A stretch of DNA of 64,000 bases, taken from sequence record PP886230.1, one strand, 5' to 3'. Within the stretch, counting starts at the first letter, position 1. Each line of letters opens with the position of its first letter. The notes beneath the pieces were generated by a model. The model saw nothing but the letters and a program-made list of their open reading frames with translations, made no database searches and was not told the origin of the DNA. The translations under genes were made by a program, and so were the position numbers. Below are positions 2,865 to 18,853 of this stretch, one piece after another.

Positions 2865-3095
2865 ATGACTAATATGTATATGACTGAAGTTAAAACCGTA
2901 AAAGATACTACCACGAATAAAACTACTTACTTACAGCGGATCTGTGGTGTATGGCAACGTATCAGCAAATCAAAGTACTTTAAATTAACATCATATGCAA
3001 ACCGTTCTGATTCATTCAGTACTGAAATAAAAGGTAATAAAGTACACCAATACGGCACTTATTATTATTACAGCCTGGACGCGATTGCAGTATAA
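2865..3095 (+). CDS. hypothetical early protein
   Basis: promoter cassette, GGAG RBS. Confidence 0.8.
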   Translation: MTNMYMTEVKTVKDTTTNKTTYLQRICGVWQRISKSKYFKLTSYANRSDSFSTEIKGNKVHQYGTYYYYSLDAIAV

Positions 3096-3159
3096 GCAGT
3101 TTACAAATCTTTACAATTGCCGGTATTGACTTATTTTGTCAGTACTGGCATAATGTATT

Positions 3160-3205
3160 CATTGGCAGATAAGCCGTAGCCCATAGGGTGCGGGAGTGTA
3201 TCTAT
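3160..3205 (+). ncRNA. CCC-ANN-GGGTG element
   Basis: motif 3180-3190 behind TTGACT-17-CATAAT (3126-3154). Confidence 0.45.
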
Positions 3206-3224
3206 AGAAAAATTAGTTTAGTAT

Positions 3225-3265
3225 AGTTACAATTGTGCACCCGGTGGGTTAGCTGTTGTCATGGG
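3225..3265 (-). ncRNA. CCC-ANN-GGGTG element
   Basis: motif 3238-3248 on minus strand behind TTGACA-17-CATAAT (3298-3270). Confidence 0.45.
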
Positions 3266-3379
3266 GTATATTATGCCAGTACTTGATAATGCTGTCAATA
3301 CTTTTTTTTACTATCCAGTACAGAAAACTATTTTTAAAAAGTACTTGCAAACTATGTTTAAAGGCGTATAATGTTTTAC

Positions 3380-3455
3380 ATCAGGACGGGGGAACGAAAT
3401 AAGTAACTTCCCGTTAAGTAGCCCAGGAGTAAGGCACACGAAAAACTCCCCTGAT
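3380..3455 (+). ncRNA. ~75-nt closed structured RNA candidate, copy 1
   Basis: own promoter; ATCAGG/CCTGAT closing stem; immediately followed by the next promoter. Confidence 0.5.
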
Positions 3456-3523
3456 AAAATAGTTTGACAAATGTTTTTAAAAGCGTATAATACTTACATC
3501 AACTACTGAATGAGGGTTACAAA

Positions 3524-4135
3524 ATGAAAACTATCACTACTACTACTTTCGTTATGGATTTTTCTGAATTGAACGCAGAACAAAAAACGTCAGCTATCGA
3601 ACTGGTTCGGGAACGTGAAAAAAACTCAAACGACAATTATTTTTCTGAAAGTGAAATTGAATACTATAAAGAAACAGTACTACCGGAATATGGCATTAAT
3701 GACGCTGAAATACAATTCAGTGGCTTTTGGTCCCAGGGTGACGGTGCATCAATCAGTACTGACCACGTTGACGCAGTGAAGTTTTTACGCAAGGTAAGAG
3801 CATTAACTAAGTATCGCTCAATCCGTCACTTGCTGAATGAAGATGATTTGGCGATGAGTGTAAAGCGTTCGCACTCCCACTACTCGCATGAGAATACTGT
3901 AAGCGGGTACATTGAATCGGCTTACACTGATTTAACCGCAAAACAAGAAACGTTAGTTAATGAGCTTGAGGAACTACTCACTGATACTATTCGTGAATTG
4001 TCCCGCAAGTTGTACCGTGATTTAGAGAATGCATATGAGGATCAATTCACTACTGAAAACATTACGGCACTGATTGAGGGTAACGAGTATCAATTCAATG
4101 TTATTGATGGCGTAGTGGAATCAATCGAATATTAA
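3524..4135 (+). CDS. phage/mobile-element hypothetical protein (FSGFWSQGDGA motif)
   Basis: motif recalled from MGE proteins often loosely annotated as antitoxin; function unknown. Confidence 0.75.
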   Translation: MKTITTTTFVMDFSELNAEQKTSAIELVREREKNSNDNYFSESEIEYYKETVLPEYGINDAEIQFSGFWSQGDGASISTDHVDAVKFLRKVRALTKYRSIRHLLNEDDLAMSVKRSHSHYSHENTVSGYIESAYTDLTAKQETLVNELEELLTDTIRELSRKLYRDLENAYEDQFTTENITALIEGNEYQFNVIDGVVESIEY

Positions 4136-4227
4136 TTTAAAAAGTACTTGCAAACTAAGTTTAAAAGCGTATAATACTTTATATCGAGAGCGGGAATAGT
4201 TCCCGCTACTAATGAGGAATACTACAA

Positions 4228-4392
4228 ATGAATACTTTTACCTTCGCTCAATTGAACGCCCTGGATGTATTGTCTGATGCTTTGCGGGATGCAACTGAAA
4301 GCGGTTTATTTGACAATGTTGACATTCACCCTGATGTAATTAATAATTTTTGTGATGCTATCGCAGAAGTACTGGAAGATCTAAAAAAATAA
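4228..4392 (+). CDS. small hypothetical protein (54 aa)
   Basis: promoter cassette and GAGG RBS; below ORF-track cutoff. Confidence 0.7.
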   Translation: MNTFTFAQLNALDVLSDALRDATESGLFDNVDIHPDVINNFCDAIAEVLEDLKK

Positions 4393-4480
4393 TAGAAAGT
4401 ACTTGCAATTAGTTTTTAGTACTGTATAATGTTTTACATAGAGGGGAGAAATGGTTCTCCCTGGTAATGAGGAAAATACA

Positions 4481-4702
4481 ATGGCTAATATCACTACTCT
4501 TTCCCAACTGGAAGCACTGGTTAAATCTATGCGGGAACATGCCGACAATATCGGCGTAAAAGATCCAGCCGTTTGCTTCTGCGACGAATTGAATGATGAT
4601 ACCCTGGTAATAGCAGAAGTCCAGGACGTTTCTAACTATTCCTCGCGTTACACTGGCGGCGTAGCAAATAAAGGTGACTTCTGTTTATACCTTACCAAAT
4701 AA
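4481..4702 (+). CDS. hypothetical early protein
   Basis: promoter cassette, RBS, terminator-like hairpin after. Confidence 0.8.
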   Translation: MANITTLSQLEALVKSMREHADNIGVKDPAVCFCDELNDDTLVIAEVQDVSNYSSRYTGGVANKGDFCLYLTK

Positions 4703-4754
4703 CAACGCGGGGAGATAATAACTCCCCGTTACTTTTTCAGTACTGAATCATTTA

Positions 4755-4803
4755 ATAGACGGATCTCGGCACCCGGTGGGTTAGTGACTGTTTCGTCTTG
4801 ATG
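4755..4803 (-). ncRNA. CCC-ANN-GGGTG element
   Basis: motif 4770-4780 on minus strand behind TTGACA-17-CATAAT (4837-4809). Confidence 0.45.
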
Positions 4804-4945
4804 TAGTAATTATGCCAGTACTGGATGCACTTGTCAACAACTATTTTTCAAATACTTTTTATTAAAATACTTGCTAATAGTTTTTAAACGCGTATAATGT
4901 TTTGCATAGGGGGAGCGGTTCCCCTGGTAACTAAGGAATAATAAA

Positions 4946-5182
4946 ATGCTTGAACAAATCAAATCAACGTCTGCGAATGTAACGGGAACGGTTGTACACT
5001 TTACTAGTGATGAATCGCGGGGCGTTCCCTATTGTGCTGTACATGTAAACACTGATGGCAACTACTGGTTTACGGTTTACGGATCATATTCATTTGGACG
5101 ACCAGGGCATCAAAAAATTCTGGATAAAGTACAGCCAACGGGTAAAAATATCACGGCTGAAATGTTTTATAAAAAATCATAA
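4946..5182 (+). CDS. hypothetical early protein
   Basis: promoter cassette and RBS. Confidence 0.8.
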   Translation: MLEQIKSTSANVTGTVVHFTSDESRGVPYCAVHVNTDGNYWFTVYGSYSFGRPGHQKILDKVQPTGKNITAEMFYKKS

Positions 5183-5267
5183 AGTACTTGATAATAGTTT
5201 TTAGTACTGTATAATATTTTACATCGCAAGGGGGTAATGGTTCCCCCTGGTAACTAAGGATAATCAA

Positions 5268-5567
5268 ATGAAAGTTGCATTCATCGCCCTGGCTTTATCT
5301 GTTTCCTCTTTTGCTGTTAATGCGTCGTTAGATGTAAGTAGTGAAAAATTCATTCAGTGCACTGTAGCAATGACAGATGAAAGTACTGGCGAGATTGTAT
5401 TAAAGGATCTGGAGATTCAGCCGGAAGCATTTAAAAACGGCCCGTTCCATGAAGAAGACGAAAACGGTAGCACAACAATTTATTATGATGCCAGTACTAA
5501 ACGCGGGTCGGTCACTGTTATGGATACTGAGAAAGTAACTCATACTGGCGTTATTAATTGCCGTTGA
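5268..5567 (+). CDS. exported protein with Sec-type signal peptide
   Basis: MKVAFIALALSVSSFAVNA (K, hydrophobic core, AxA). Confidence 0.7.
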   Translation: MKVAFIALALSVSSFAVNASLDVSSEKFIQCTVAMTDESTGEIVLKDLEIQPEAFKNGPFHEEDENGSTTIYYDASTKRGSVTVMDTEKVTHTGVINCR

Positions 5568-5588
5568 TAGATACTACGGGGTAACATC

Positions 5589-5819
5589 ATGACTAAGCGA
5601 ATTGTTTTACTTAACGAAAGCAGTACTACACAACTACTTAACGCCGTGCATTATGATATTGAAACGAGCGTTAATCTTATCAGTACTGTAGTACTGTTGG
5701 ACACTGGAAAGGTCGCCAATGATAAAGCGATTGCAGGTATACTAACGGATCTTGAGCCTGGTAGCAGTGCACCAATAACGTTAAATGGTAAAGTGTTTAA
5801 TATTTTACTCACTGATTAA
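5589..5819 (+). CDS. hypothetical protein
   Basis: RBS; followed by terminator. Confidence 0.75.
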   Translation: MTKRIVLLNESSTTQLLNAVHYDIETSVNLISTVVLLDTGKVANDKAIAGILTDLEPGSSAPITLNGKVFNILLTD

Positions 5820-5825
5820 GTACAT

Positions 5826-5847
5826 AGCCCACCTGGTGGGCTTTTTT
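5826..5847 (+). terminator. intrinsic terminator
   Basis: AGCCCAC-CTG-GTGGGCT-TTTTT. Confidence 0.85.
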
Positions 5848-5936
5848 GTTTTTGTAGTATCGTAGTACTGAGATACTTTGAAAATAGTTTTAAAAAAGTA
5901 GTTGACATTACCGCAGAAAAGCGTAGAATGTATTAC

Positions 5937-6009
5937 ATCAAGACGGGGAGCACTAAGTAGACCGCCAGTAAGTCGAACGAAAAACTGGACACGTCGAGAA
6001 AACTTTGAT
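5937..6009 (+). ncRNA. diverged third copy of the structured RNA, or leader of the H-NS-like gene
   Basis: ATCAA/TTGAT closing stem; shares ACGGGG, TAAGTAG, CGAAAA. Confidence 0.3.
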
Positions 6010-6050
6010 ACACTAATAAACGTAAACTAAACTTTAATTGAGGATTTATA

Positions 6051-6533
6051 ATGGCTAATGTAAAATCATTCATCAAAGCACTGGTAGCAAATGAAACTAA
6101 CGTCGCGGCTGAGATCCTGGCTGAACTGGATAACGATACCATGAAAGCGGTACGCAATAATTTTAACATCGCGTACAGTACTGCGAAAGAACTACAAGCA
6201 AATAAAGCGGCAGAAATTGAAGCGGCAAAGGCGGCCCGTGAAGCAGAACTACAAGCAACAATCGAAAGTATCCAGGCGGCGGTGTCTGGATTGGATCTGG
6301 AAGTGGTTGTGGAAATGGCACATAAAGCCCTGGCGGTTAAGTATGGTGAAGATAAGCCAGAATCTAAACCCAAAAAATGGATTCAGGAACGCGTAGCGGT
6401 AGTACTGGACAACGGGGAAGAATATCTGATTCCGGTGCGTGGTAACTGTATTGCGGTAGTACTGGACGCTATCAAAGAAAGCGGTATGACTCGCGAGGAA
6501 TGGATCGAAGCTCATCGCAAAGTTGAAGCATAA
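6051..6533 (+). CDS. H-NS/StpA-like protein with altered DNA-binding motif
   Basis: Ala/Glu coiled coil, basic linker, C-terminal VLDNGEEYLIPVRGNCIAVVLDAIKESGMTREEW aligns by eye with H-NS [34 protein letters not shown]. Confidence 0.55.
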   Translation: MANVKSFIKALVANETNVAAEILAELDNDTMKAVRNNFNIAYSTAKELQANKAAEIEAAKAAREAELQATIESIQAAVSGLDLEVVVEMAHKALAVKYGEDKPESKPKKWIQERVAVVLDNGEEYLIPVRGNCIAVVLDAIKESGMTREEWIEAHRKVEA

Positions 6534-6554
6534 CAATTAAAGTACTGAATCACT

Positions 6555-6580
6555 AGCCCACTGTATAAGTGGGCTTTTTT
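6555..6580 (+). terminator. intrinsic terminator
   Basis: AGCCCAC-TGTATAA-GTGGGCT-TTTTT. Confidence 0.85.
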
Positions 6581-6817
6581 GTGTTTATCGTTTACCAGGC
6601 CACCAGCACCGCCTAGAAACGATTCTAACGCATTAAACGGATTATCTGATGCATTGCCCTAGCTGGTGGCGTTAAGGCTGTAAGAACGCGATTGAGAGCG
6701 TTTAAAGTATTTTGCAAAAAGTAATAAAAAGTACTTGAACGATTAAGAGATTAGCGTATAATGTTTTACATCGAGAGGGGGAAACGGTTCTCCTTCCAAA
6801 TCAAAGGAATCAAAACA

Positions 6818-7045
6818 ATGGCTATTATCATTACTCGCGTATCTGGTACTACTGGCAACGAACAAGTAGTTGCAGTCATTACGAACAAGGCAGGTGCGGA
6901 ATTGCAAAATGCAATGAATACCTGGGCCGTTAATGAGTTCGGTCAGTGGGCAAGTGTAGCATACATTGAAACCTATCAAGTGCCGTCGATTAGTTTAACT
7001 GATTTGGGCGTTGAGCGTATCCTTTGCCTTGATGAATTAAATTAA
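6818..7045 (+). CDS. hypothetical early protein
   Basis: promoter cassette; start moved from 6761. Confidence 0.8.
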   Translation: MAIIITRVSGTTGNEQVVAVITNKAGAELQNAMNTWAVNEFGQWASVAYIETYQVPSISLTDLGVERILCLDELN

Positions 7046-7130
7046 AAAAGTACTTGCAAAGTAAATCGAATAAAGTATAATACATTACATCAAGGGGAGA
7101 AATGGTTCTCCCCACTACAAGGAAACTAAA

Positions 7131-7343
7131 ATGGCTATCATTACTAAAATCAAAGTTAGTAAATCACTGGTTAAACTTGAAGAAGTGAAAGAAGGTTATA
7201 AAGTATCTTGGTGCGGTATGTATCGGACGTTCGCAGATATAGATGATGCGATCAATTATTACACTGACACGGTTAAAAACTTTGTTCGTGCTGATGTGGT
7301 TATGGCAGTGGCAACATATAAAGCATCAAAAGAAAGTAAGTAA
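7131..7343 (+). CDS. hypothetical protein, weakly similar to 10287 and 11198
   Basis: Y.VS.G....T.....A..YY pattern. Confidence 0.75.
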   Translation: MAIITKIKVSKSLVKLEEVKEGYKVSWCGMYRTFADIDDAINYYTDTVKNFVRADVVMAVATYKASKESK

Positions 7344-7424
7344 AAATATTATCACAGTACTATTGACATAGTTTGATAGTACTGGCATAATAACTTTTAT
7401 CAAGACAACTAAGAGGAAATTAAA

Positions 7425-7769
7425 ATGGCTAACATCAATACTATAGCAGCACAAAATATCAACCTGTCTTCTGTTGAAGTTGTACATATTGCCGCTCGGC
7501 GTTGGTTCCAGGCTTCATATGGTAACACTTATTTCTCTTTAAGTGTAGACGTAGAAATTGATGGTAATTTTATTGAAGTAGTAAACGTGCCGTTCCAATA
7601 TGGATACGGGGATCATTTTGACACTGTAGCAATGGAAGAATTTAGCAAGGTTATTAATATGGAAGGTAAAGAGTTTTTACGCGGTTCTTATCTTTCCCGT
7701 TTTTGCCGTGATAATAATATCACTGTTTATAGTTCTGTTAGTGATGTTAAACGCAAAAAAGATCTTTAA
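7425..7769 (+). CDS. hypothetical protein, paralog of 14309
   Basis: shared RW...GNTY.S, F.YGYG, DVKRKKD. Confidence 0.8.
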   Translation: MANINTIAAQNINLSSVEVVHIAARRWFQASYGNTYFSLSVDVEIDGNFIEVVNVPFQYGYGDHFDTVAMEEFSKVINMEGKEFLRGSYLSRFCRDNNITVYSSVSDVKRKKDL

Positions 7770-7849
7770 TTAGCTTTACTTTATGCAGATACTTTGATAT
7801 AGTGTCTGCATAGGGGAAAGAAATTAAATTAACTTAAGAGGATAGTATA

Positions 7850-8119
7850 ATGAAAAATATCAGTACTTTAATCGATGCAGGTACTCATGTTCGTCGGTCT
7901 ATGGTTGCAACCAGTACTACAAAACAAGTAGCGAGCGGTTATCTTGTATTTGTGCACGATGGTAAACTCCTGGAACGTTCAATCAATTTTGATGTTAAAA
8001 ACAATTGCCGTTTTATTATCTTTAAGCGTGAGCAATATAAAATTGATTTACCAGCAAAGCCCATTAGTGGGGCGTACAACGTGCAATCATTGTTTGAACG
8101 TCAACCATACACCTATTAA
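7850..8119 (+). CDS. hypothetical protein
   Basis: GAGG RBS. Confidence 0.75.
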   Translation: MKNISTLIDAGTHVRRSMVATSTTKQVASGYLVFVHDGKLLERSINFDVKNNCRFIIFKREQYKIDLPAKPISGAYNVQSLFERQPYTY

Positions 8120-8170
8120 TCAAAACATCGTTAGCGGTCGATTCAGGCCGCTTATATTGGGGATTATACC

Positions 8171-8443
8171 ATGAACGTTAATCAAGTACTGAATGAGATC
8201 GAAAGCATCATTAAACCGATGAAGCGTACTGATGCTATGTTAACACCGGAAGAATGCCGCCTTTATGAGCGTTACAGCGTCGAACAAGTCCAGGCAATGG
8301 CTATGGCTACCCCAGCCGTTAAACCGCCTGAGAATGCGTTACAGGACGTTACAGGGGATTATATCATCAATCCAGTACTAGGGAAGATGGCTGCAATCAC
8401 CGAAGATCAACAAGACTACTTAAGCCAGTACTTAAAAGGTTAA
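8171..8443 (+). CDS. hypothetical protein
   Basis: RBS, in series. Confidence 0.7.
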   Translation: MNVNQVLNEIESIIKPMKRTDAMLTPEECRLYERYSVEQVQAMAMATPAVKPPENALQDVTGDYIINPVLGKMAAITEDQQDYLSQYLKG

Positions 8444-8448
8444 TTAAT

Positions 8449-8658
8449 ATGCTTACTGTACAGGATAAGATCGACATCTTAAAGGTTAATATGTATGTGA
8501 TTGATGCAGAACCTGGTAAAGTATTTGCATACGATGATAGTACTGTAAGCGATTTCTACTATAGCCAGGCCGTGGGGGATCTTTCTGTACAGTCGGTTAT
8601 TGAAAACGTAGTTAATGCAGCGTATGAGCATTTACTTTCAAATAGTACTTGCAATTAG
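8449..8658 (+). CDS. hypothetical protein
   Basis: in series with upstream gene. Confidence 0.7.
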   Translation: MLTVQDKIDILKVNMYVIDAEPGKVFAYDDSTVSDFYYSQAVGDLSVQSVIENVVNAAYEHLLSNSTCN

Positions 8659-8728
8659 TTTTTAAACGCGTATAATGTTTTACATCGAGAGCGGGAATAG
8701 TTCCCGCCTCACTTTTAAGGAATATGAA

Positions 8729-8875
8729 ATGAAAGCATCAAAAAAGAGTACTAACAAGAAAGCACGTTCAACCTTAGATGGGGTATTCCCTTTACGTTTC
8801 GTTGATGAAGTGGTTTCCTACCCGCCTGGCCTTACTCCTGAGATGGTAGAAAGTTTGCGTAAATCTAAAAAATAG
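8729..8875 (+). CDS. small basic hypothetical protein
   Basis: promoter cassette; start moved from 8675. Confidence 0.7.
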   Translation: MKASKKSTNKKARSTLDGVFPLRFVDEVVSYPPGLTPEMVESLRKSKK

Positions 8876-8956
8876 TACTTGCAATTAGTTTTTAGTACTG
8901 TATAATGTTTTACATGAAGGGGAGAAATGATTCTCCCCAATAACAGGAGAAACAAA

Positions 8957-9109
8957 ATGAAACAATACAACGCTCGGTTTGATGTTACTATCGGTAACGG
9001 CAAAGGTCAATTCTCTTTCAGTACTCGCCGCAGTTATACAGAAAACTTCCTGCGTAATTGTGCATTGACCGCCGCTCAAATTAAACATTATTTTCAGGCT
9101 AAAAAATGA
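8957..9109 (+). CDS. small hypothetical protein
   Basis: promoter cassette, AGGAG RBS. Confidence 0.7.
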   Translation: MKQYNARFDVTIGNGKGQFSFSTRRSYTENFLRNCALTAAQIKHYFQAKK

Positions 9110-9195
9110 GATCATTAGCTTATTACAGTTCGGCCCTGGTCGGTGCATTGATCGCGGCGTTGTTAGTAACCTATCTATTCTTTATGGTGATTTAA
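9106..9195 (+). CDS. 29-aa membrane peptide
   Basis: ATGA-coupled; ALVGALIAALLVTYLFFMVI. Confidence 0.5.
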   Translation: MRSLAYYSSALVGALIAALLVTYLFFMVI

Positions 9196-9333
9196 ATGAA
9201 TCCTAACGGTATAATTTACAGTACTCCTAAAACGAAAGCAGACAAGGTAAACGCTAAAAAAGCGAAAGTAAAGGAGTACATCAAACAAGGAATGACACGA
9301 AAGGCGGCGATTCTAAAAGCTAAAAATAAATGA
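9196..9333 (+). CDS. 45-aa lysine-rich peptide
   Basis: adjoins upstream ORF; ends before terminator hairpin. Confidence 0.55.
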   Translation: MNPNGIIYSTPKTKADKVNAKKAKVKEYIKQGMTRKAAILKAKNK

Positions 9334-9374
9334 AAAAGTGGTTGACTTCGGTCAGCCATTTTGCTATTATATAT

Positions 9375-9422
9375 TCATTGAGAGATAGCTCACTAGCCCA
9401 CAGGGTGCAGGAGTGTATCTAT
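9375..9422 (+). ncRNA. CCC-ANN-GGGTG element
   Basis: motif 9397-9407; -35 (9342) lies inside a UUCG terminator-like hairpin. Confidence 0.45.
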
Positions 9423-9553
9423 TGTATAATGTTTGAGTACTGAAAACTATTTTAAAGTATTTGATAAAAAGTACTTGCAAACTATCTCAATAAGCGTATA
9501 ATGTTTTACATCGCAAGGGGAAACGGTTTCCCCTAGTAATAAGGAAACGAATC

Positions 9554-9895
9554 ATGACTATCTCAATTGCTCAATCTAACTTTGAAAATGAAATCATCGC
9601 CCAGGCACTGCGTTTAAATGATGGTCGGGCCGAAATCAATTACGGTTTCAATTCAGGCGGTTGTGAAAAATATCAGTACTTTGTAACGGCTGATGGCGGT
9701 GTACTGGGCATCAATACAGTTATTGTAAACATACAGAAAATTAATTTCAATGATCCAGACGATAGCCAGTTTTACATCACTGGCGTAGACGTGAACTATG
9801 AGGATGACTCACTAACTGATGACCACACTGGCGAGAAGTTAGAAAGTGCATACGGTGAAGATGATTATCAGTCCGGTCCAGAAGATTTCGAATAA
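9554..9895 (+). CDS. acidic hypothetical protein (DVNYED..L.DDHTG..LESAYG)
   Basis: promoter cassette and RBS. Confidence 0.8.
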   Translation: MTISIAQSNFENEIIAQALRLNDGRAEINYGFNSGGCEKYQYFVTADGGVLGINTVIVNIQKINFNDPDDSQFYITGVDVNYEDDSLTDDHTGEKLESAYGEDDYQSGPEDFE

Positions 9896-9991
9896 TATTA
9901 AAAAATAGTTTGACAATAGATTATAGTACTGTATAATAGTTTACATCAAGGGGAGAAAAACTTCTCCCCACTAACAGAGAGAGAAAACAAA

Positions 9992-10204
9992 ATGGCTAAT
10001 ATCCGGTCGAAATTAAAAAATGCAAAACAAGTTTTATTTTCAGATCATGAATACTTTAATAAAGATATTACAGGAGTTACAAGTATCAAGGAAGTAAAAG
10101 AAAAAACCGGCGTTTTGTGTGATGTGCGATTAGTTGGGACATTTGGGAATAACGTGCTATATCGCTGTGGTGATTACAATTTTACACTGACTATCATTAA
10201 CTAA
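9992..10204 (+). CDS. hypothetical early protein
   Basis: promoter cassette. Confidence 0.8.
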   Translation: MANIRSKLKNAKQVLFSDHEYFNKDITGVTSIKEVKEKTGVLCDVRLVGTFGNNVLYRCGDYNFTLTIIN

Positions 10205-10286
10205 AAATATTATCACAGTACTATTGACATAGTTTGATAGTACTGACATAATAACTTTTATCAACTACACTACTAAGGAATTAAAA

Positions 10287-10466
10287 ATGGCTATCATCGC
10301 AAAAACTGAAATCATCGGCCTGGATTCTATCATCATGACGTTTGAAGATCAAAAAGGTATGTATGTGGTTTCCTATGGTGATTATGTTCGGGAGTATGAA
10401 ACGGTAGACGAAGCCTTTGAAAGTTACATTCGCCAGGTGAATAAAGCATACGACGACTACCGCTAA
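10287..10466 (+). CDS. small hypothetical protein (59 aa)
   Basis: promoter and AAGG RBS; related to 7131. Confidence 0.7.
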   Translation: MAIIAKTEIIGLDSIIMTFEDQKGMYVVSYGDYVREYETVDEAFESYIRQVNKAYDDYR

Positions 10467-10565
10467 AATATATTACCAGTACTATTAAAGATATTGACAA
10501 CGTTTGATAGTACTGTATAATAAGTTTTATAAACAGTAGTTAACTTAACCTAAGAGAGAAATAAA

Positions 10566-10709
10566 ATGATCGCACTGGATTCATTCATCGACGCAGTACT
10601 GGCAAAAACTGGCGAGGATCTGACCGCAGAACAATACGCGATGATCGAACAATGTCAACAGGACGGTAAATCGGTGAAAGATACTGTTAAGATTATCCGC
10701 AAGATGTAA
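10566..10709 (+). CDS. small hypothetical protein (47 aa)
   Basis: own promoter; terminator-like hairpin after. Confidence 0.65.
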   Translation: MIALDSFIDAVLAKTGEDLTAEQYAMIEQCQQDGKSVKDTVKIIRKM

Positions 10710-10814
10710 GATTATAGCCCACTGGTTAACGCTGGTGGGCTTTAATTCATTACCCTATACAATGCCAGTACTAAACCGTTTATCTCGTTAGAATGCGTTA
10801 CAGGACGTTTACCA

Positions 10815-11012
10815 ATGATTAGCATGAAATCAGTACAAAAACAAATAGAAACATTATCAAAAATTAAACGTAAACAGTACTCCTTAGAATATACAATCAA
10901 TGGTAACTATCATCTAATGAAAGAAAATAATTTTATAGTCATTGATGAATCATTGCAAATCATTAGTATAGTACTGAAAGCATTAATCAATGACAGAAAA
11001 AAATTAAAATAA
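10815..11012 (+). CDS. hypothetical protein
   Basis: ORF track; weak RBS. Confidence 0.55.
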   Translation: MISMKSVQKQIETLSKIKRKQYSLEYTINGNYHLMKENNFIVIDESLQIISIVLKALINDRKKLK

Positions 11013-11049
11013 ACTATTGACAATATCATCCAGCACTGGCATAATACTT

Positions 11050-11098
11050 ACACCAAGACGAGAACGTCACTAACCCATAGGGTGCACAAATGTAACTG
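11050..11098 (+). ncRNA. CCC-ANN-GGGTG element
   Basis: motif 11074-11084 behind TTGACA-17-CATAAT (11017-11045). Confidence 0.45.
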
Positions 11099-11132
11099 TA
11101 TAATATTGATCAAAAAATGATCTGATCAATAC

Positions 11133-11160
11133 TTGATCAATTTGCGTAAAGTAGTATAAT
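11133..11160 (+). promoter_or_regulatory. promoter with GATC in the -35, inside a cluster of four GATC sites
   Basis: TTGATC-16-TATAAT; GATC at 11108, 11119, 11124, 11135. Confidence 0.5.
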
Positions 11161-11197
11161 TCTATGCAGTTGGTTAGACGAAAGGTTATGATTAGTA

Positions 11198-11344
11198 GTG
11201 CAAGTGTATAAAAATTTTCATGGTGTATCGTTCCGCACATATGGGGATGAATATGTGGTATCATGTGGATTGGAAAAAGTAAGAACAAGTAATATTATTG
11301 TCGCATTACAGTACTATAGTATTTTTATAATGAGGTTAAAATAA
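11198..11344 (+). CDS. small hypothetical protein (GTG start, or 1-nt frameshift from ATG 11188)
   Basis: TAATG-coupled to the TraR-like gene; YVVSCG pattern as in 7131/10287. Confidence 0.45.
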   Translation: MQVYKNFHGVSFRTYGDEYVVSCGLEKVRTSNIIVALQYYSIFIMRLK

Positions 11345-11601
11345 TGGCTGTAGGATTCGCGAAAGATGGGGCCGAGCAAGACGAGATTAACGCAGTGATT
11401 CAGGCCGCCGTTAACCACGCTAGAAAGCAAATTAACGCACAAATAGAATCACTGATACATTGCCTCGACTGCGGCGATATAATCCCTGAGAAACGACGCC
11501 AGGCCGTTAAGGGATGTAAGTACTGCATAACTTGCCAGGAGGATCATGATAGTACTTTTAAACGTCCCCCGCGTAATTGTTGGCATAGATCTATGAGATA
11601 A
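11344..11601 (+). CDS. DksA/TraR-family C4 zinc-finger protein (YbiI/TraR-like)
   Basis: GFAKDGAEQDEI N-terminus; CLDCGDIIPEKRRQAVKGCKYCITCQ. Confidence 0.9.
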   Translation: MAVGFAKDGAEQDEINAVIQAAVNHARKQINAQIESLIHCLDCGDIIPEKRRQAVKGCKYCITCQEDHDSTFKRPPRNCWHRSMR

Positions 11602-11664
11602 AAAGTATTGACAGTACTGAAAGATAGTGTATAATGTTTTATATCTTAACTGAGGATAGTAATC

Positions 11665-12021
11665 ATGGGAATACAACATATCACGCGTACTACTGACAAT
11701 GGCGAGATCACTGGCTATCAAGTACAGGGCAAAGTAGCACAATTGCAGTACTGGTTTGTGAAACGTGGAATCATTGCACCGGATCTTGATTATGACCGTG
11801 TAGCGTTTATTGATTCTCTTTATGTTGATCCTGATAGTCGGGGCAATGGTGAAGGTAACGAATTAATGAATGCCTTTATTGATGCCGCCGATGATTCAGA
11901 TTGTATCATTTTAGAATGCGATACGGGAGAAGATAACGCCTTTAATCTTAAAGAATGGTACGAAGGTTTCGGATTCGAGGTACTGATCGATAGTGAATAT
12001 CCTATCATGATTTTATCATAG
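11665..12021 (+). CDS. GNAT-family acetyltransferase
   Basis: IDSLYVDPDSRGNGEG (motif A), LKEWYEGFGF (motif B); own promoter. Confidence 0.85.
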   Translation: MGIQHITRTTDNGEITGYQVQGKVAQLQYWFVKRGIIAPDLDYDRVAFIDSLYVDPDSRGNGEGNELMNAFIDAADDSDCIILECDTGEDNAFNLKEWYEGFGFEVLIDSEYPIMILS

Positions 12022-12099
12022 TACTTGCATTTAGTTTTCAGTACTGTTATAGTACTTGCATCAAGGGGAAACATCTTCCCCTACTAAGAGGAAATAAAA

Positions 12100-12288
12100 A
12101 TGGAAAACTTATCAAGTATTTTAGTACAAGATGATTTCGGTAATCCTGGAAGTGCTATCATTGTTCGGGGTAATAAAGCAACGTTTGTTATTGCTGGTGG
12201 ACCAGTACAGCGTAGCATTAAAAATAATGCTGTTACCATTAATAATGTACGCTATCGCTTAGATAAAGAATTGATTCATAAACTGTAA
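12100..12288 (+). CDS. hypothetical early protein
   Basis: promoter cassette. Confidence 0.75.
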   Translation: MENLSSILVQDDFGNPGSAIIVRGNKATFVIAGGPVQRSIKNNAVTINNVRYRLDKELIHKL

Positions 12289-12315
12289 TATTAATTTAAT
12301 AGAGGATAACAATAA

Positions 12316-12639
12316 ATGTACATTCATACTACTATCACAAAGGAAGTCCGTTGCCAGTTCGAAAGTATTCCGGGCGTATGTTTCATCACTGGTACGTTTT
12401 CCCCTGGTGATCGTGATAATCCAGTACTGTTACAATTACGCCATCCATCATGGGATAAAGCATTTGATCTACCGTTGAATGAATTCGCAACTACTGCTGA
12501 AAAGTACATTAAAAATATTCGCGAGAATGATCGACTATTCATTAATGCTTTTAGTGATTCCGCGTTAAGCGAGATCCACGGCGTATTGGTTGCAATCATG
12601 GAATCAATGCAGAAAACTAAATTCAAACAAGGTGAATAA
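12316..12639 (+). CDS. hypothetical protein
   Basis: GAGG RBS. Confidence 0.75.
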   Translation: MYIHTTITKEVRCQFESIPGVCFITGTFSPGDRDNPVLLQLRHPSWDKAFDLPLNEFATTAEKYIKNIRENDRLFINAFSDSALSEIHGVLVAIMESMQKTKFKQGE

Positions 12640-12722
12640 AAACTATTGACAATGCAACCCAGTACTGTATAATAGTTTACATGAAGGGGAGAAATGATTC
12701 TCCCCACTGAGAGGAAAGAAAA

Positions 12723-12935
12723 ATGCAAGGTCAACTAATCGTTCGTAAATGGTCTGATACTAACGAAAAACCGTGGGATGTACAATACATCGGACCGGAT
12801 GGGGTATCACGTTATCAGCCTGGCGTAACGCATAGTACTGAGCAATATGCCGCCGCTCACCGCGAACGCCTGTTAGAATCCATGAAACAGGGATTCTGTG
12901 AAAAATTCATTCAAGATCATTGGCTGAAAGATTAA
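12723..12935 (+). CDS. hypothetical early protein
   Basis: promoter cassette. Confidence 0.8.
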   Translation: MQGQLIVRKWSDTNEKPWDVQYIGPDGVSRYQPGVTHSTEQYAAAHRERLLESMKQGFCEKFIQDHWLKD

Positions 12936-12952
12936 TAGAAGGAGTACAGCTT

Positions 12953-13045
12953 ATGCAAATGAATCCGATGATTATTGTTTTAGCTGTACTTATGATCATT
13001 CATGCAATTGTAGAAGTATTAACGCAATCAGGAGTAATAAAATGA
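12953..13045 (+). CDS. 30-aa membrane peptide
   Basis: AAGGAG RBS; MIIVLAVLMIIHAIV. Confidence 0.55.
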   Translation: MQMNPMIIVLAVLMIIHAIVEVLTQSGVIK

Positions 13046-13215
13046 TTCAAGTAGAATTATCAGTACTGAAAGATCTGTTTTATCGGTTAGGTACTACTGG
13101 AGAGTATCCTAAAAGTGATACCGCAAAACTTTTTGTATCACTCGACTTATGGCAACGCGAACAATTAGTAATGTCCTGGCGTAAAGGTAAAGCAGATCGC
13201 GAGGTGAAAGCATGA
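13042..13215 (+). CDS. small hypothetical protein
   Basis: GGAG RBS, ATGA-coupled. Confidence 0.6.
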   Translation: MIQVELSVLKDLFYRLGTTGEYPKSDTAKLFVSLDLWQREQLVMSWRKGKADREVKA

Positions 13216-13361
13216 AAGAATTCTTATTCGAAGTAGTGTTTCAAGGTGTCGGTAGTAACCAACTGATTCGCTCAAGTGGTTACAATGTTAACCAGGCATG
13301 GAATAACATTAAACAAATGTACCCGAACGCTATCACCTATCGCAACCCGAAAGAAGTTTAA
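13212..13361 (+). CDS. small hypothetical protein
   Basis: GAGGTG RBS, ATGA-coupled. Confidence 0.6.
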   Translation: MKEFLFEVVFQGVGSNQLIRSSGYNVNQAWNNIKQMYPNAITYRNPKEV

Positions 13362-13411
13362 AAATATTTGAAAAAGGGATTGACTCCGGTCAGTCCCTTT
13401 GCTATTATATA

Positions 13412-13455
13412 CGCATAGAAACAATTCAGCCCACCGGGTGCATAAATGTATCTAT
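13412..13455 (+). ncRNA. CCC-ANN-GGGTG element
   Basis: motif 13430-13440; -35 inside GGGATTGAC-TCCG-GTCAGTCCC hairpin. Confidence 0.45.
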
Positions 13456-13533
13456 TATATGCTGGTGGCTAGTACTGAAAACTATTTTTAAAAAGTACTT
13501 GCATTGTATTTAGAATCAAGTATAATGTTTTAC

Positions 13534-13606
13534 ATCAGGACGGGGAACGAAACAAGTAACCCCGTTAAGTAGTCCAGGAGTAAGACATACGAAAACCTCC
13601 CCTGAT
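13534..13606 (+). ncRNA. ~75-nt closed structured RNA candidate, copy 2
   Basis: near-identical to 3380-3455 with a compensatory GCC/GGC to GTC/GAC change. Confidence 0.5.
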
Positions 13607-13674: not shown

Positions 13675-13950
13675 ATGCGGATTCTACTGACAGCTAACGA
13701 AATCGAACAAGTACTGACTACTAACCTGGAAGACTGGAAACGTGAAGCAGATATCCAGGCGGTTCAATGGTTAAATGATAAGTTAACGCCGGATGACTTA
13801 AGCAAGATTGTAGATCCTCAATTCTACGAAGATATCCACGACACCGCGTTAAGCGTCGAGGATGTACTAGATAAGCACTTTATTGATACTGATTTGCAGG
13901 TTTACGGTCGTAAAAACTTTATCACTATTCACGACATTTACAATAATTAA
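13675..13950 (+). CDS. acidic hypothetical protein
   Basis: promoter and RBS. Confidence 0.8.
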   Translation: MRILLTANEIEQVLTTNLEDWKREADIQAVQWLNDKLTPDDLSKIVDPQFYEDIHDTALSVEDVLDKHFIDTDLQVYGRKNFITIHDIYNN

Positions 13951-16403: not shown

Positions 16404-16451
16404 TCATTGAGAGATAACTCACTGACCCATAGGGTGCGGAAGTGTATCTAT
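16404..16451 (+). ncRNA. CCC-ANN-GGGTG element
   Basis: motif 16426-16436; same hairpin-promoter upstream. Confidence 0.45.
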
Positions 16452-16573
16452 TATATAAGTATTCAGTACTGAAAACTATTTTTAAAAAGTACTTGCATTG
16501 TACTTAGAATCAAGTATAATGTTTTATATCGAGAGGGGAAATGGTTCTCCCTCAAAGAACAAGGAATAAAATC

Positions 16574-18662: not shown

Positions 18663-18705
18663 CGCATAGACAAAAACTAGCCCACAGGGTGCATAGGTGT
18701 ATCCA
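18663..18705 (+). ncRNA. CCC-ANN-GGGTG element
   Basis: motif 18681-18691; same hairpin-promoter upstream. Confidence 0.45.
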
Positions 18706-18853
18706 AAATATATAGTTAATAACGGTGAGTAACTATCTGCTGGTGGAACTAAAACTATTAATAAAAAAGTATTGACAAAGTATATCAGTACTGCGATAAT
18801 GTATCTCGTAGGGCGGCAATGGTGCGACGGCCCACAAAGTTAGGAGATTCAAA

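Follow-up and report, generated by a model that had tools for sequence, protein, structure and literature searches.

Just past the early promoters of phage HK022, host RNA polymerase makes the put RNAs, structured RNAs of about 70 nucleotides (nt) that act without a phage protein. The leaders of T4 gene 32, of Escherichia coli rpsO (S15) and of the alpha operon (S4) fold into pseudoknots in which conserved unpaired residues take part in recognition by a protein. The element described here is likewise encoded in the nascent early transcript just past an early promoter, and it is likewise a 5'-leader pseudoknot. It occurs three times in the left 64 kb of a PBECO4/121Q-like E. coli jumbo phage (PP886230.1, Escherichia phage vB_EcoM_E9.1); this stretch of 64,000 nt is called the window, and positions are those of the window unless another genome is named. 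Copies A (3380–3455), B (13534–13606) and C (5937–6009) can be aligned over their full extent, from the first promoter through the element to the second promoter. The original prediction had placed two close copies and one diverged copy of a closed RNA here, and this was confirmed by alignment, pattern matching and a covariance model. The three loci are members of a widespread phage RNA family with a conserved, closed and pseudoknotted domain on the + strand.

In Rfam 15, no family matched the whole window at the gathering score, and copy A and the A1–A3 region of T7 gave only chance-level matches at E values up to 10. A literature search, which did not reach older papers in subscription journals, found no description of the element, whose sequence appeared only in construct tables. 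Apparently, these RNAs form a large, previously undescribed family of pseudoknotted phage RNA domains.

The pseudoknot core

The conserved unit is a 36-nt core, in which the sequence UAAGUAG is followed by an H-type pseudoknot with a first stem (S1) of 3 bp and a second stem (S2) of 4–5 bp; the third loop (L3) of the pseudoknot is A-rich and contains ACGAA. Cores were gathered by patterns with N at every stem position and by BLAST matches, and 35 distinct sequences were aligned. As the stem positions were free in the search patterns, the pairing was not imposed by the search. Over S1 (columns 8–10 with 21–23) and S2 (columns 13–16 with 34–37), 99.6% of the 245 cells were standard pairs; S1 was paired in 99.0% of its cells with two covarying pairs and S2 in 100% with three. 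Five of the seven core pairs thus change on both sides, which is the compensation among homologues that the original prediction had expected (an earlier version of the count had used 26 sequences), and both helices of the predicted H-type RNA pseudoknot are backed by compensatory changes.

The covariation score of the core was 0.488, against 0.099 in shuffled alignments, and none of 500 shuffles attained the observed score, a fraction that is not a probability, the sequences being related by descent. When the partner strand was slid by 1–3 columns, pairing dropped to 17–35%. The middle pair of S1 is A-U in 23 sequences, C-G in six and U-A in five, with one mismatch in phage EmilieFrey, and the third pair is C-G in 34 sequences and U-A in one (Entb_48). 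These S1 variants are found on differing S2 backgrounds and therefore arose more than once. The pairs of S2 are C-G or G-C at the first position, C-G, G-C or U-A at the second, U-A, A-U or U-G at the third and an invariant G-C at the last.

The same pattern is visible among the three copies of the window. The 3-bp S1 is GCC/GGC in copy A, GUC/GAC in B and GAC/GUC in C, so the compensatory change first noticed between A and B generalizes across many phages. The pairing of GGAG with CUCC, proposed earlier as a possible pseudoknot, is S2 of copies A and B, and it is replaced by CCAG with CUGG in copy C. Since both pseudoknot stems covary among the three, copy C is a true homologue. The core pattern with free stem positions matched only these copies in the 64 kb, with none expected by chance, and covariance model R1 recovered the same three, all on the + strand, at 52–54 bits (E about 1e-11), the next match having E = 0.2.

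RNAalifold alone predicts S2, and the single-sequence folding z-scores of the three copies are modest (-1.15, -1.76 and -0.19); the structural support is covariation and not folding energy. As a control, the loop words were also inspected in unrelated genomes, where none of 12 chance matches had an intact S1; just two cases, made only of A and U, had four of four S2 pairs. Across unrelated phage families, 15 of the 43 alignment columns are invariant in the 35 sequences, mostly unpaired ones, a count to which the search itself contributed in the loop words, and the members derived from BLAST show occasional changes in these words.

Closing helices

In T7-like phages, a 4-bp hairpin stands immediately 5' of UAAGUAG, and its loop pairs with a tail of 5–6 nt that starts 2 nt after S2; in T7 itself, the paired tail is the RNA copy of the -35 hexamer of promoter A2. 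This loop–tail helix was counted by a script anchored on UAAGUAG and on the end of S2, because MAFFT gave inconsistent registers for the T7-type hairpin loop and tail. A longest-duplex statistic (40 nt upstream against the tail), in which 29% of shuffles reached 5 bp, was dropped and the fixed-register count was used. In the fixed register, 129 of 130 cells paired in 26 distinct sequences and all five positions covaried, with six loop/tail combinations, among them GUCAA/UUGAC, GUCAUC/GAUGAC, GUCGGU/ACCGAC and GAUUAG/CUAAUC. Shifts of register gave 13–41% pairing, and none of 2000 permutations of the tails among the sequences attained the observed pairing. The hairpin stem also varies with compensation (CCGG/CCGG, CCAG/CUGG, CCAC/GUGG and ACCG/CGGU).

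A hairpin loop that forms a pseudoknot is also found in pistol ribozymes, and some small-ribozyme classes are common in phages. The size of the element, its multiple pseudoknots and its invariant junction nucleotides recall such ribozymes, so a self-cleaving or nuclease-guiding element, trimming the leader of the upstream promoter or freeing a small RNA, was considered. We hold it to be quite improbable, as no ribozyme family was matched in Rfam and the helix order of pistol, twister and HDV-like folds differs from the one found here. In addition, decades of in vitro work with T7 A1 transcripts have, to our knowledge, brought no report of self-cleavage.

In the window copies and in all non-T7-like lineages, the tail pairs with the strand 5' of the hairpin and forms a closing stem, P0. 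It was found in at least nine differing sequences and mostly begins straight after S2, on which it is stacked; in the three window copies and in other myoviruses, its 5' end is at about +1 of the transcript. Between P0 and UAAGUAG, a hairpin (the P1 hairpin) stands in copies A and B, fENko-Kae01 and MJG, whereas copy C, LTH01, EJP2, LIMEzero and L037 are without it. Both the 5'/3' closing stem and the ACGGGG/CCCCGU hairpin of the original prediction were found in the minimum-free-energy folds. Within the A/B type alone, P0 and the P1 hairpin are invariant or show only G.U changes, so these outer stems are supported by analogy across lineages and not within the type. G.U pairs are present in S2, P0, the P1 hairpin and the loop–tail helix; because each would be an A.C mismatch on the opposite strand, the folded molecule is the + strand RNA.

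The position of P0 brings in another explanation, in which the domain is a generic stabilizer that, as a closed 5' end, simply guards the transcripts from 5'-end-dependent decay. A plain 5' hairpin indeed stands at the same place after nearly every other early promoter of the window, and the P1 hairpin of copies A and B is homologous to this standard hairpin. A stabilizer, however, needs only a stem, whereas the invariant columns are mostly unpaired and are kept across unrelated families, and in T7 the element begins at about +54, behind a separate 5' hairpin. We therefore consider this explanation unlikely.

Distribution among phages

BLAST with copy A found 45 phage records, from Asteriusvirus-like jumbo phages, Justusliebigvirus (muut, EmilieFrey) and Vequintavirinae (A73 and others); the matches in the last two groups have about 90% identity to copy A, and each is located between two promoters. 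With copy C as the query, matches came from other Rak2-like jumbo phages (of Klebsiella, Salmonella and Erwinia) and, unexpectedly, from T7-like Yersinia phages, with which copy C shares 35 nt at 91% identity between flanks without similarity. In phiA1122 and T7, the element lies between the early promoters A1 and A2. The core pattern is at nt 551–581 of T7 (39,937 bp), where A1 is annotated at 498 and A2 at 626. The detailed reading used a T7 record that is a recombinant clone, whose core is identical to that of the 39,937-bp sequence. The A1–A2 interval of phiA1122 matches 572 phage records, and the pseudoknot core is its most widely conserved part.

The core is also found in Drulisvirus, Waewaevirus (LIMEzero), Colwellvirinae (Aeromonas phage MJG) and Enterobacter phage Entb_48. 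The element is present in several Autographiviridae lineages and near-universal across hosts from Escherichia to Aeromonas; in a survey that left out T4-, T5-, N4- and SP6-like phages, it was restricted to phages of Enterobacterales and Aeromonas. In IMG/VR, a first pattern scan gave only phage 121Q, and 33 loci came out once the pattern was loosened and its stems were left free, while the six loci from a metagenome scan were for the most part closely related to the window. A scan of bacteria and archaea, with one representative genome for each of 185,579 species, yielded 11 loci, ten of which were chance matches without pairing, used as a negative control; the sole true match is a 2.7-kb phage-like contig with T3-type sequence.

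The element is always downstream of an early promoter, and the domain, encoded on the + strand, directly follows a strong sigma-70 promoter of this kind. A second promoter (P2) usually comes next, 2 to about 45 nt further on; the -35 hexamer of A2 in T7-like phages adjoins the element or even overlaps it, and EJP2, L037 and Entb_48 have no P2. A role of the DNA alone, as an upstream element of P2 or as a recombination module of tandem-promoter cassettes, would account for this neighbourhood and for an early region that, in the window, is composed of shuffled promoter cassettes. It would leave unexplained the compensatory changes, which preserve pairing while the sequence changes, the tolerance of G.U pairs on the + strand only, and the variable or missing P2. 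We regard such a role, with no function for the RNA, as very improbable indeed.

The genes downstream of the element differ between lineages; the one exception is the C type, which in Rak2-like phages keeps a phrog_27871/20181 gene as its neighbour. All Autographiviridae genomes examined also have a boxA-like sequence in the same untranslated leader, downstream of the element; in T7, it comes after A2 and A3. The boxA-like sequence reads CGCTCTTTAACAA after the pseudoknot (L037 4165–4185; L074–L076; L070), with a gap of 17–50 nt in single-promoter phages, and the same words occur in 100-kb Proteus phages, which were not checked for the pseudoknot. A second well-conserved stretch was observed in the A2–A3 interval of T7-like phages (L013 640–700, L016 650–700 and others), around GGUGACUUAAGCGCACC ... 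AAGGUG; one of its strands could pair with either of two partners, and it may be another structured leader element.

This variable context bears on a further possibility, a riboswitch-like aptamer that reads a small host metabolite in the first transcript. Pseudoknot aptamers typically have unpaired nucleotides that do not vary and an A-rich loop that crosses a short stem, and the element combines both in a compact fold with multiple pseudoknots. What follows it, on the other hand, varies among a promoter, a boxA and a ribosome binding site, and no expression platform was found, neither a terminator nor a sequestration of the ribosome binding site tied to the fold. No Rfam riboswitch was matched even at E up to 10, and an aptamer is judged improbable.

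The three copies in the early region of the window

The first 20 kb of the window are an array of early cassettes, each with an A/T-rich upstream stretch, a strong sigma-70 promoter, a short single-stranded lead, a 5' hairpin, a Shine-Dalgarno sequence and a small open reading frame (ORF). At least 25 copies of one promoter cassette, AAAGTACTTGCA-N17-TATAATGTTTTACAT, are present between 350 and 19250, each followed by a lead such as AUCGAGAG and by the 5' hairpin, whose sequence varies; in spacing and in the bases transcribed first, the cassettes resemble the T7 A1 promoter. Bases 3000–6500 have 99.9% identity with vB_EcoM_E9.1, where they lie at the same coordinates, and 92–98% identity with PBECO4/121Q-like jumbo phages of 350–385 kb, and in related records this early region falls within the direct terminal repeat.

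All features of the copies are on the + strand. Promoter P1 of copy A (3345–3372, TTGCAA-16-TATAAT) is one of the repeated early-promoter cassettes. In the RNA domain of copy A (3380–3455), P0 is formed by 3380–3385 with 3450–3455 and the P1 hairpin by 3386–3392 with 3408–3414; then follow the junction UAAGUAG (3415–3421), S1 (3421–3423 with 3433–3435), S2 (3426–3429 with 3446–3449) and the A-rich L3 (3436–3445). Its promoter P2 (3464–3491, TTGACA-16-TATAAT, 12 of 12 matches) drives the gene at 3524–4135. The loop of the P1 hairpin of copy A (3393–3407) contains ACGAAA and then UAAGUA, that is, both conserved words of the pseudoknot, adjacent and in reverse order; this pair of words is not kept in A73 or 121Q.

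Promoter P1 of copy B (13499–13526, TTGCAT-16-TATAAT) belongs to the promoter repeat families D1/D2. The domain (13534–13606) has P0 at 13534–13539 with 13601–13606, the P1 hairpin at 13540–13545 with 13560–13565, UAAGUAG at 13566–13572, S1 at 13572–13574 with 13584–13586, S2 at 13577–13580 with 13597–13600 and L3 at 13587–13596. Promoter P2 (13615–13642, TTGACA-16-TATAAT, 12 of 12 matches) drives the gene at 13675–13950, a homologue of which is likewise downstream of the element in phage muut.

Copy C (5937–6009) follows promoter P1 at 5902–5929 (TTGACA-16-TAGAAT) and is without the P1 hairpin. Its closing stems are 5942–5945 with 5992–5995 (inner) and 5937–5941 with 6005–6009 (outer), and they enclose UAAGUAG (5954–5960), S1 (5960–5962 with 5972–5974), S2 (5965–5968 with 5985–5988) and L3 (5975–5984). 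A degenerate second promoter (6005–6033, TTGATA-17-TAAACT, 9 of 12 matches) aligns with P2 of copies A and B and is followed by the gene at 6051–6533.

As predicted, the copies start at the expected transcription start, 8 nt past the -10 hexamer (TATAAT or TAGAAT), which is the spacing of the annotated T7 A1 start. That the element ends just before the next promoter holds for A and B, where the perfect promoter is 9 nt beyond the closing stem; in C, only the degenerate promoter follows. Nor is it literally true that no ORF is present, since mechanical ORFs overlap copy A (3256–3402, + strand; 3311–3439, - strand) and copy C (5902–6030, + strand), but they look spurious. The ORFs 3256–3402 and 5902–6030 are annotated as hypothetical proteins in PP886230.1 (CDS0011 and CDS0019) and are probably annotation artefacts, as both cross P1 promoters into the RNA element. 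For annotation in general, the element explains several "hypothetical proteins" called across these intergenic regions.

No terminator-like site was found between the element and the next promoter in the window copies, so each copy probably forms the beginning of an early transcript that runs on beyond it. The discrete RNA of about 75 nt proposed at first is therefore not supported by the sequence. The transfer RNA (tRNA) and tmRNA scan of the window gave no match, and the element is not a tRNA.

The neighbouring proteins gave only matches of unknown function in Pfam, PHROGs, PADLOC and PDB searches, with no defence, toxin or H-NS signature: the six proteins flanking the copies had no PADLOC match, and the three downstream proteins, the only ones of the window scanned against Pfam, had no Pfam match. 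The gene downstream of copy C, described at first as H-NS-like, had neither a Pfam nor a PDB match. This gene (6051–6533) belongs to phrog_27871/20181, of unknown function, and in Klebsiella phage fENko-Kae01 and Erwinia phage Hallingskeid the C-type element is likewise followed by a homologue of it.

The original prediction had proposed a trans-acting decoy, either a CsrA sponge or an antitoxin mimic of the type III kind; mimicry of some other defence RNA is considered along with it. In its favour, the earliest and strongest promoters would produce such an RNA ahead of any phage protein, its pseudoknot has a parallel in the units of type III antitoxins, and copies A and B hold two GGA motifs. 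Both motifs, though, lie in paired strands; copy C has no GGA, and copy C and the T7-type cores carry CCAG, CCUG or CUUG with a compensating change in the partner, so pairing is conserved and not GGA. No Csr/Rsm or other Rfam family was matched, and a sponge as an independent small-RNA gene would lack its own terminator between the element and P2. The antitoxin version meets three dispersed single copies, one per locus with no tandem array, and no toxin gene signature or defence gene beside them. The near-universal presence from Escherichia to Aeromonas also argues for a core host target and not for a sporadic defence system. Taken as a whole, a decoy appears highly improbable, and its CsrA version is refuted by these sequence data.

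Other repeats were observed in the window. A six-copy repeat, TAGCCCAYAGGGTGC ... GTGTATCTAT (3177–3213, 9394–9430, 11071–11107, 13427–13463, 16423–16459 and 18678–18714), is upstream of some cassettes, those of copies A and B included, and near copy B it belongs to a longer 101-nt family (13360–13460). Between 20900 and 25020, a 50-nt unit ending in GGAACAAACTATCAA occurs 11 times at a spacing of about 215 nt, probably an array of small paralogous genes, and nine dispersed copies of GAAGAGGAATACTTTCAG-like words occur within larger ORFs between 26140 and 50160.

Proposed function

In the mechanism that we propose, host RNA polymerase would start at promoter P1 and make the domain as the 5' part of a long early transcript, which, judging from the missing terminator, would read through P2 into the next gene. 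The folded domain may be a recognition module for a conserved host component of transcription elongation or RNA surveillance, an assignment that we make tentatively. Acting on the first long untranslated leaders of the phage, such a module would, for example, shield them from Rho or ribonucleases or help to load elongation factors, in a mode comparable to that of protein-binding leader pseudoknots and of RNAs that act on the polymerase that made them. A host factor is favoured over a gene in cis because the downstream genes vary and the representative genomes of bacteria and archaea lack the element. Unpaired nucleotides are conserved to an extreme degree across unrelated phages, the element is restricted to phages of Enterobacterales and Aeromonas, and no partner gene is constant; all three speak for a core host component and against a phage gene product or a sporadic defence system as the target. 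The boxA in the same Autographiviridae leaders suggests a link with elongation control. Blocking T7 A1 alone strongly delayed lysis without lowering the reporter output from the region (PMC11863960), which is compatible with an A1-specific function without proving one.

Several points weigh against this proposal. The function and its putative binding partner are inferred from context alone, and the strongly conserved unpaired nucleotides fit a ligand-binding or catalytic RNA equally well. In T7-like phages, only A1 transcripts carry the element, because it sits upstream of A2 and A3, and this is odd for a signal that modifies every polymerase; in the window, it is found on only three of about 40 early promoters. 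The boxA search of the window gave results no better than chance, with none near any copy. Moreover, the shuffle controls overstate the independence of the sequences, and the invariance of the loop words is partly a product of the patterns and of BLAST. All considered, the complete reading, a widespread family of closed pseudoknot RNAs in early leaders that serve as a host-factor recognition module, has in our judgement slightly less than an even chance of being right.

Few viruses have been studied as thoroughly as T7, whose A1 promoter is in standard use, yet its A1–A2 stretch holds an RNA fold more conserved than the surrounding promoters. This fold is common, at about 90% identity, to T7, to myoviruses unrelated to it and to jumbo phages of 350 kb. 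Its conservation in the earliest RNA of the infection speaks for an interaction with a component that all enterobacterial hosts share, and identification of the partner could reveal a new phage route to take over or protect early transcription; the compact RNA module could also serve expression systems. A bolder form, in which the element is a new structured-RNA class, a closed double pseudoknot that is the first folded product of T7-like and several large enterobacterial phages and either hijacks a core host machine or senses a metabolite, is rather doubtful. If it were true, the machine would be RNA polymerase with its elongation factors, Rho or the decay apparatus, and the fold would have been overlooked in the T7 A1 leader for forty years.

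Comparison with known systems

The put RNAs of HK022 are the counterpart in setting, and the element, like them, would act without a phage protein. They consist of two stem-loops, whereas the element is a pseudoknot, a distinction drawn from their description and not from an alignment with the put sequence, and no relationship to them emerged in sequence or in Rfam. Unlike in the put setting, T7-like phages carry the element on only the first of three promoters. The leader pseudoknots of T4 gene 32, S15 and S4 overlap or control the ribosome binding site of one cognate gene, while the gene downstream of the element is variable and no ribosome binding site is involved; these leader-pseudoknot families had no Rfam match here.

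The ToxI antitoxins of type III systems are similar in their pseudoknotted units of about 36 nt, their A-rich single-stranded parts and their relevance to phages, but they are tandem repeats beside the gene of one specific toxin, and the element occurs as single copies, without a toxin, in phages of many hosts. The CsrB, CsrC and Rsm sponges are non-coding RNAs with GGA motifs, as are copies A and B; they have many such motifs in hairpin loops and their own terminator, in contrast to the element, which has from zero to two GGA, all paired and unconserved, and no terminator. The pistol ribozyme is a small phage-associated RNA in which a 5' hairpin loop is pseudoknotted with a downstream strand, as in the T7-type element, but its helix order and conserved nucleotides differ and it gave no Rfam match. 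Finally, the PeSL cassettes of T4-type phages are repeated modules of an early promoter and a stem-loop that are shuffled between genomes, much as the cassettes of the window. PeSL is a concept of recombination at the DNA level and involves a simple hairpin, whereas the element is a covarying pseudoknot conserved across phage families.

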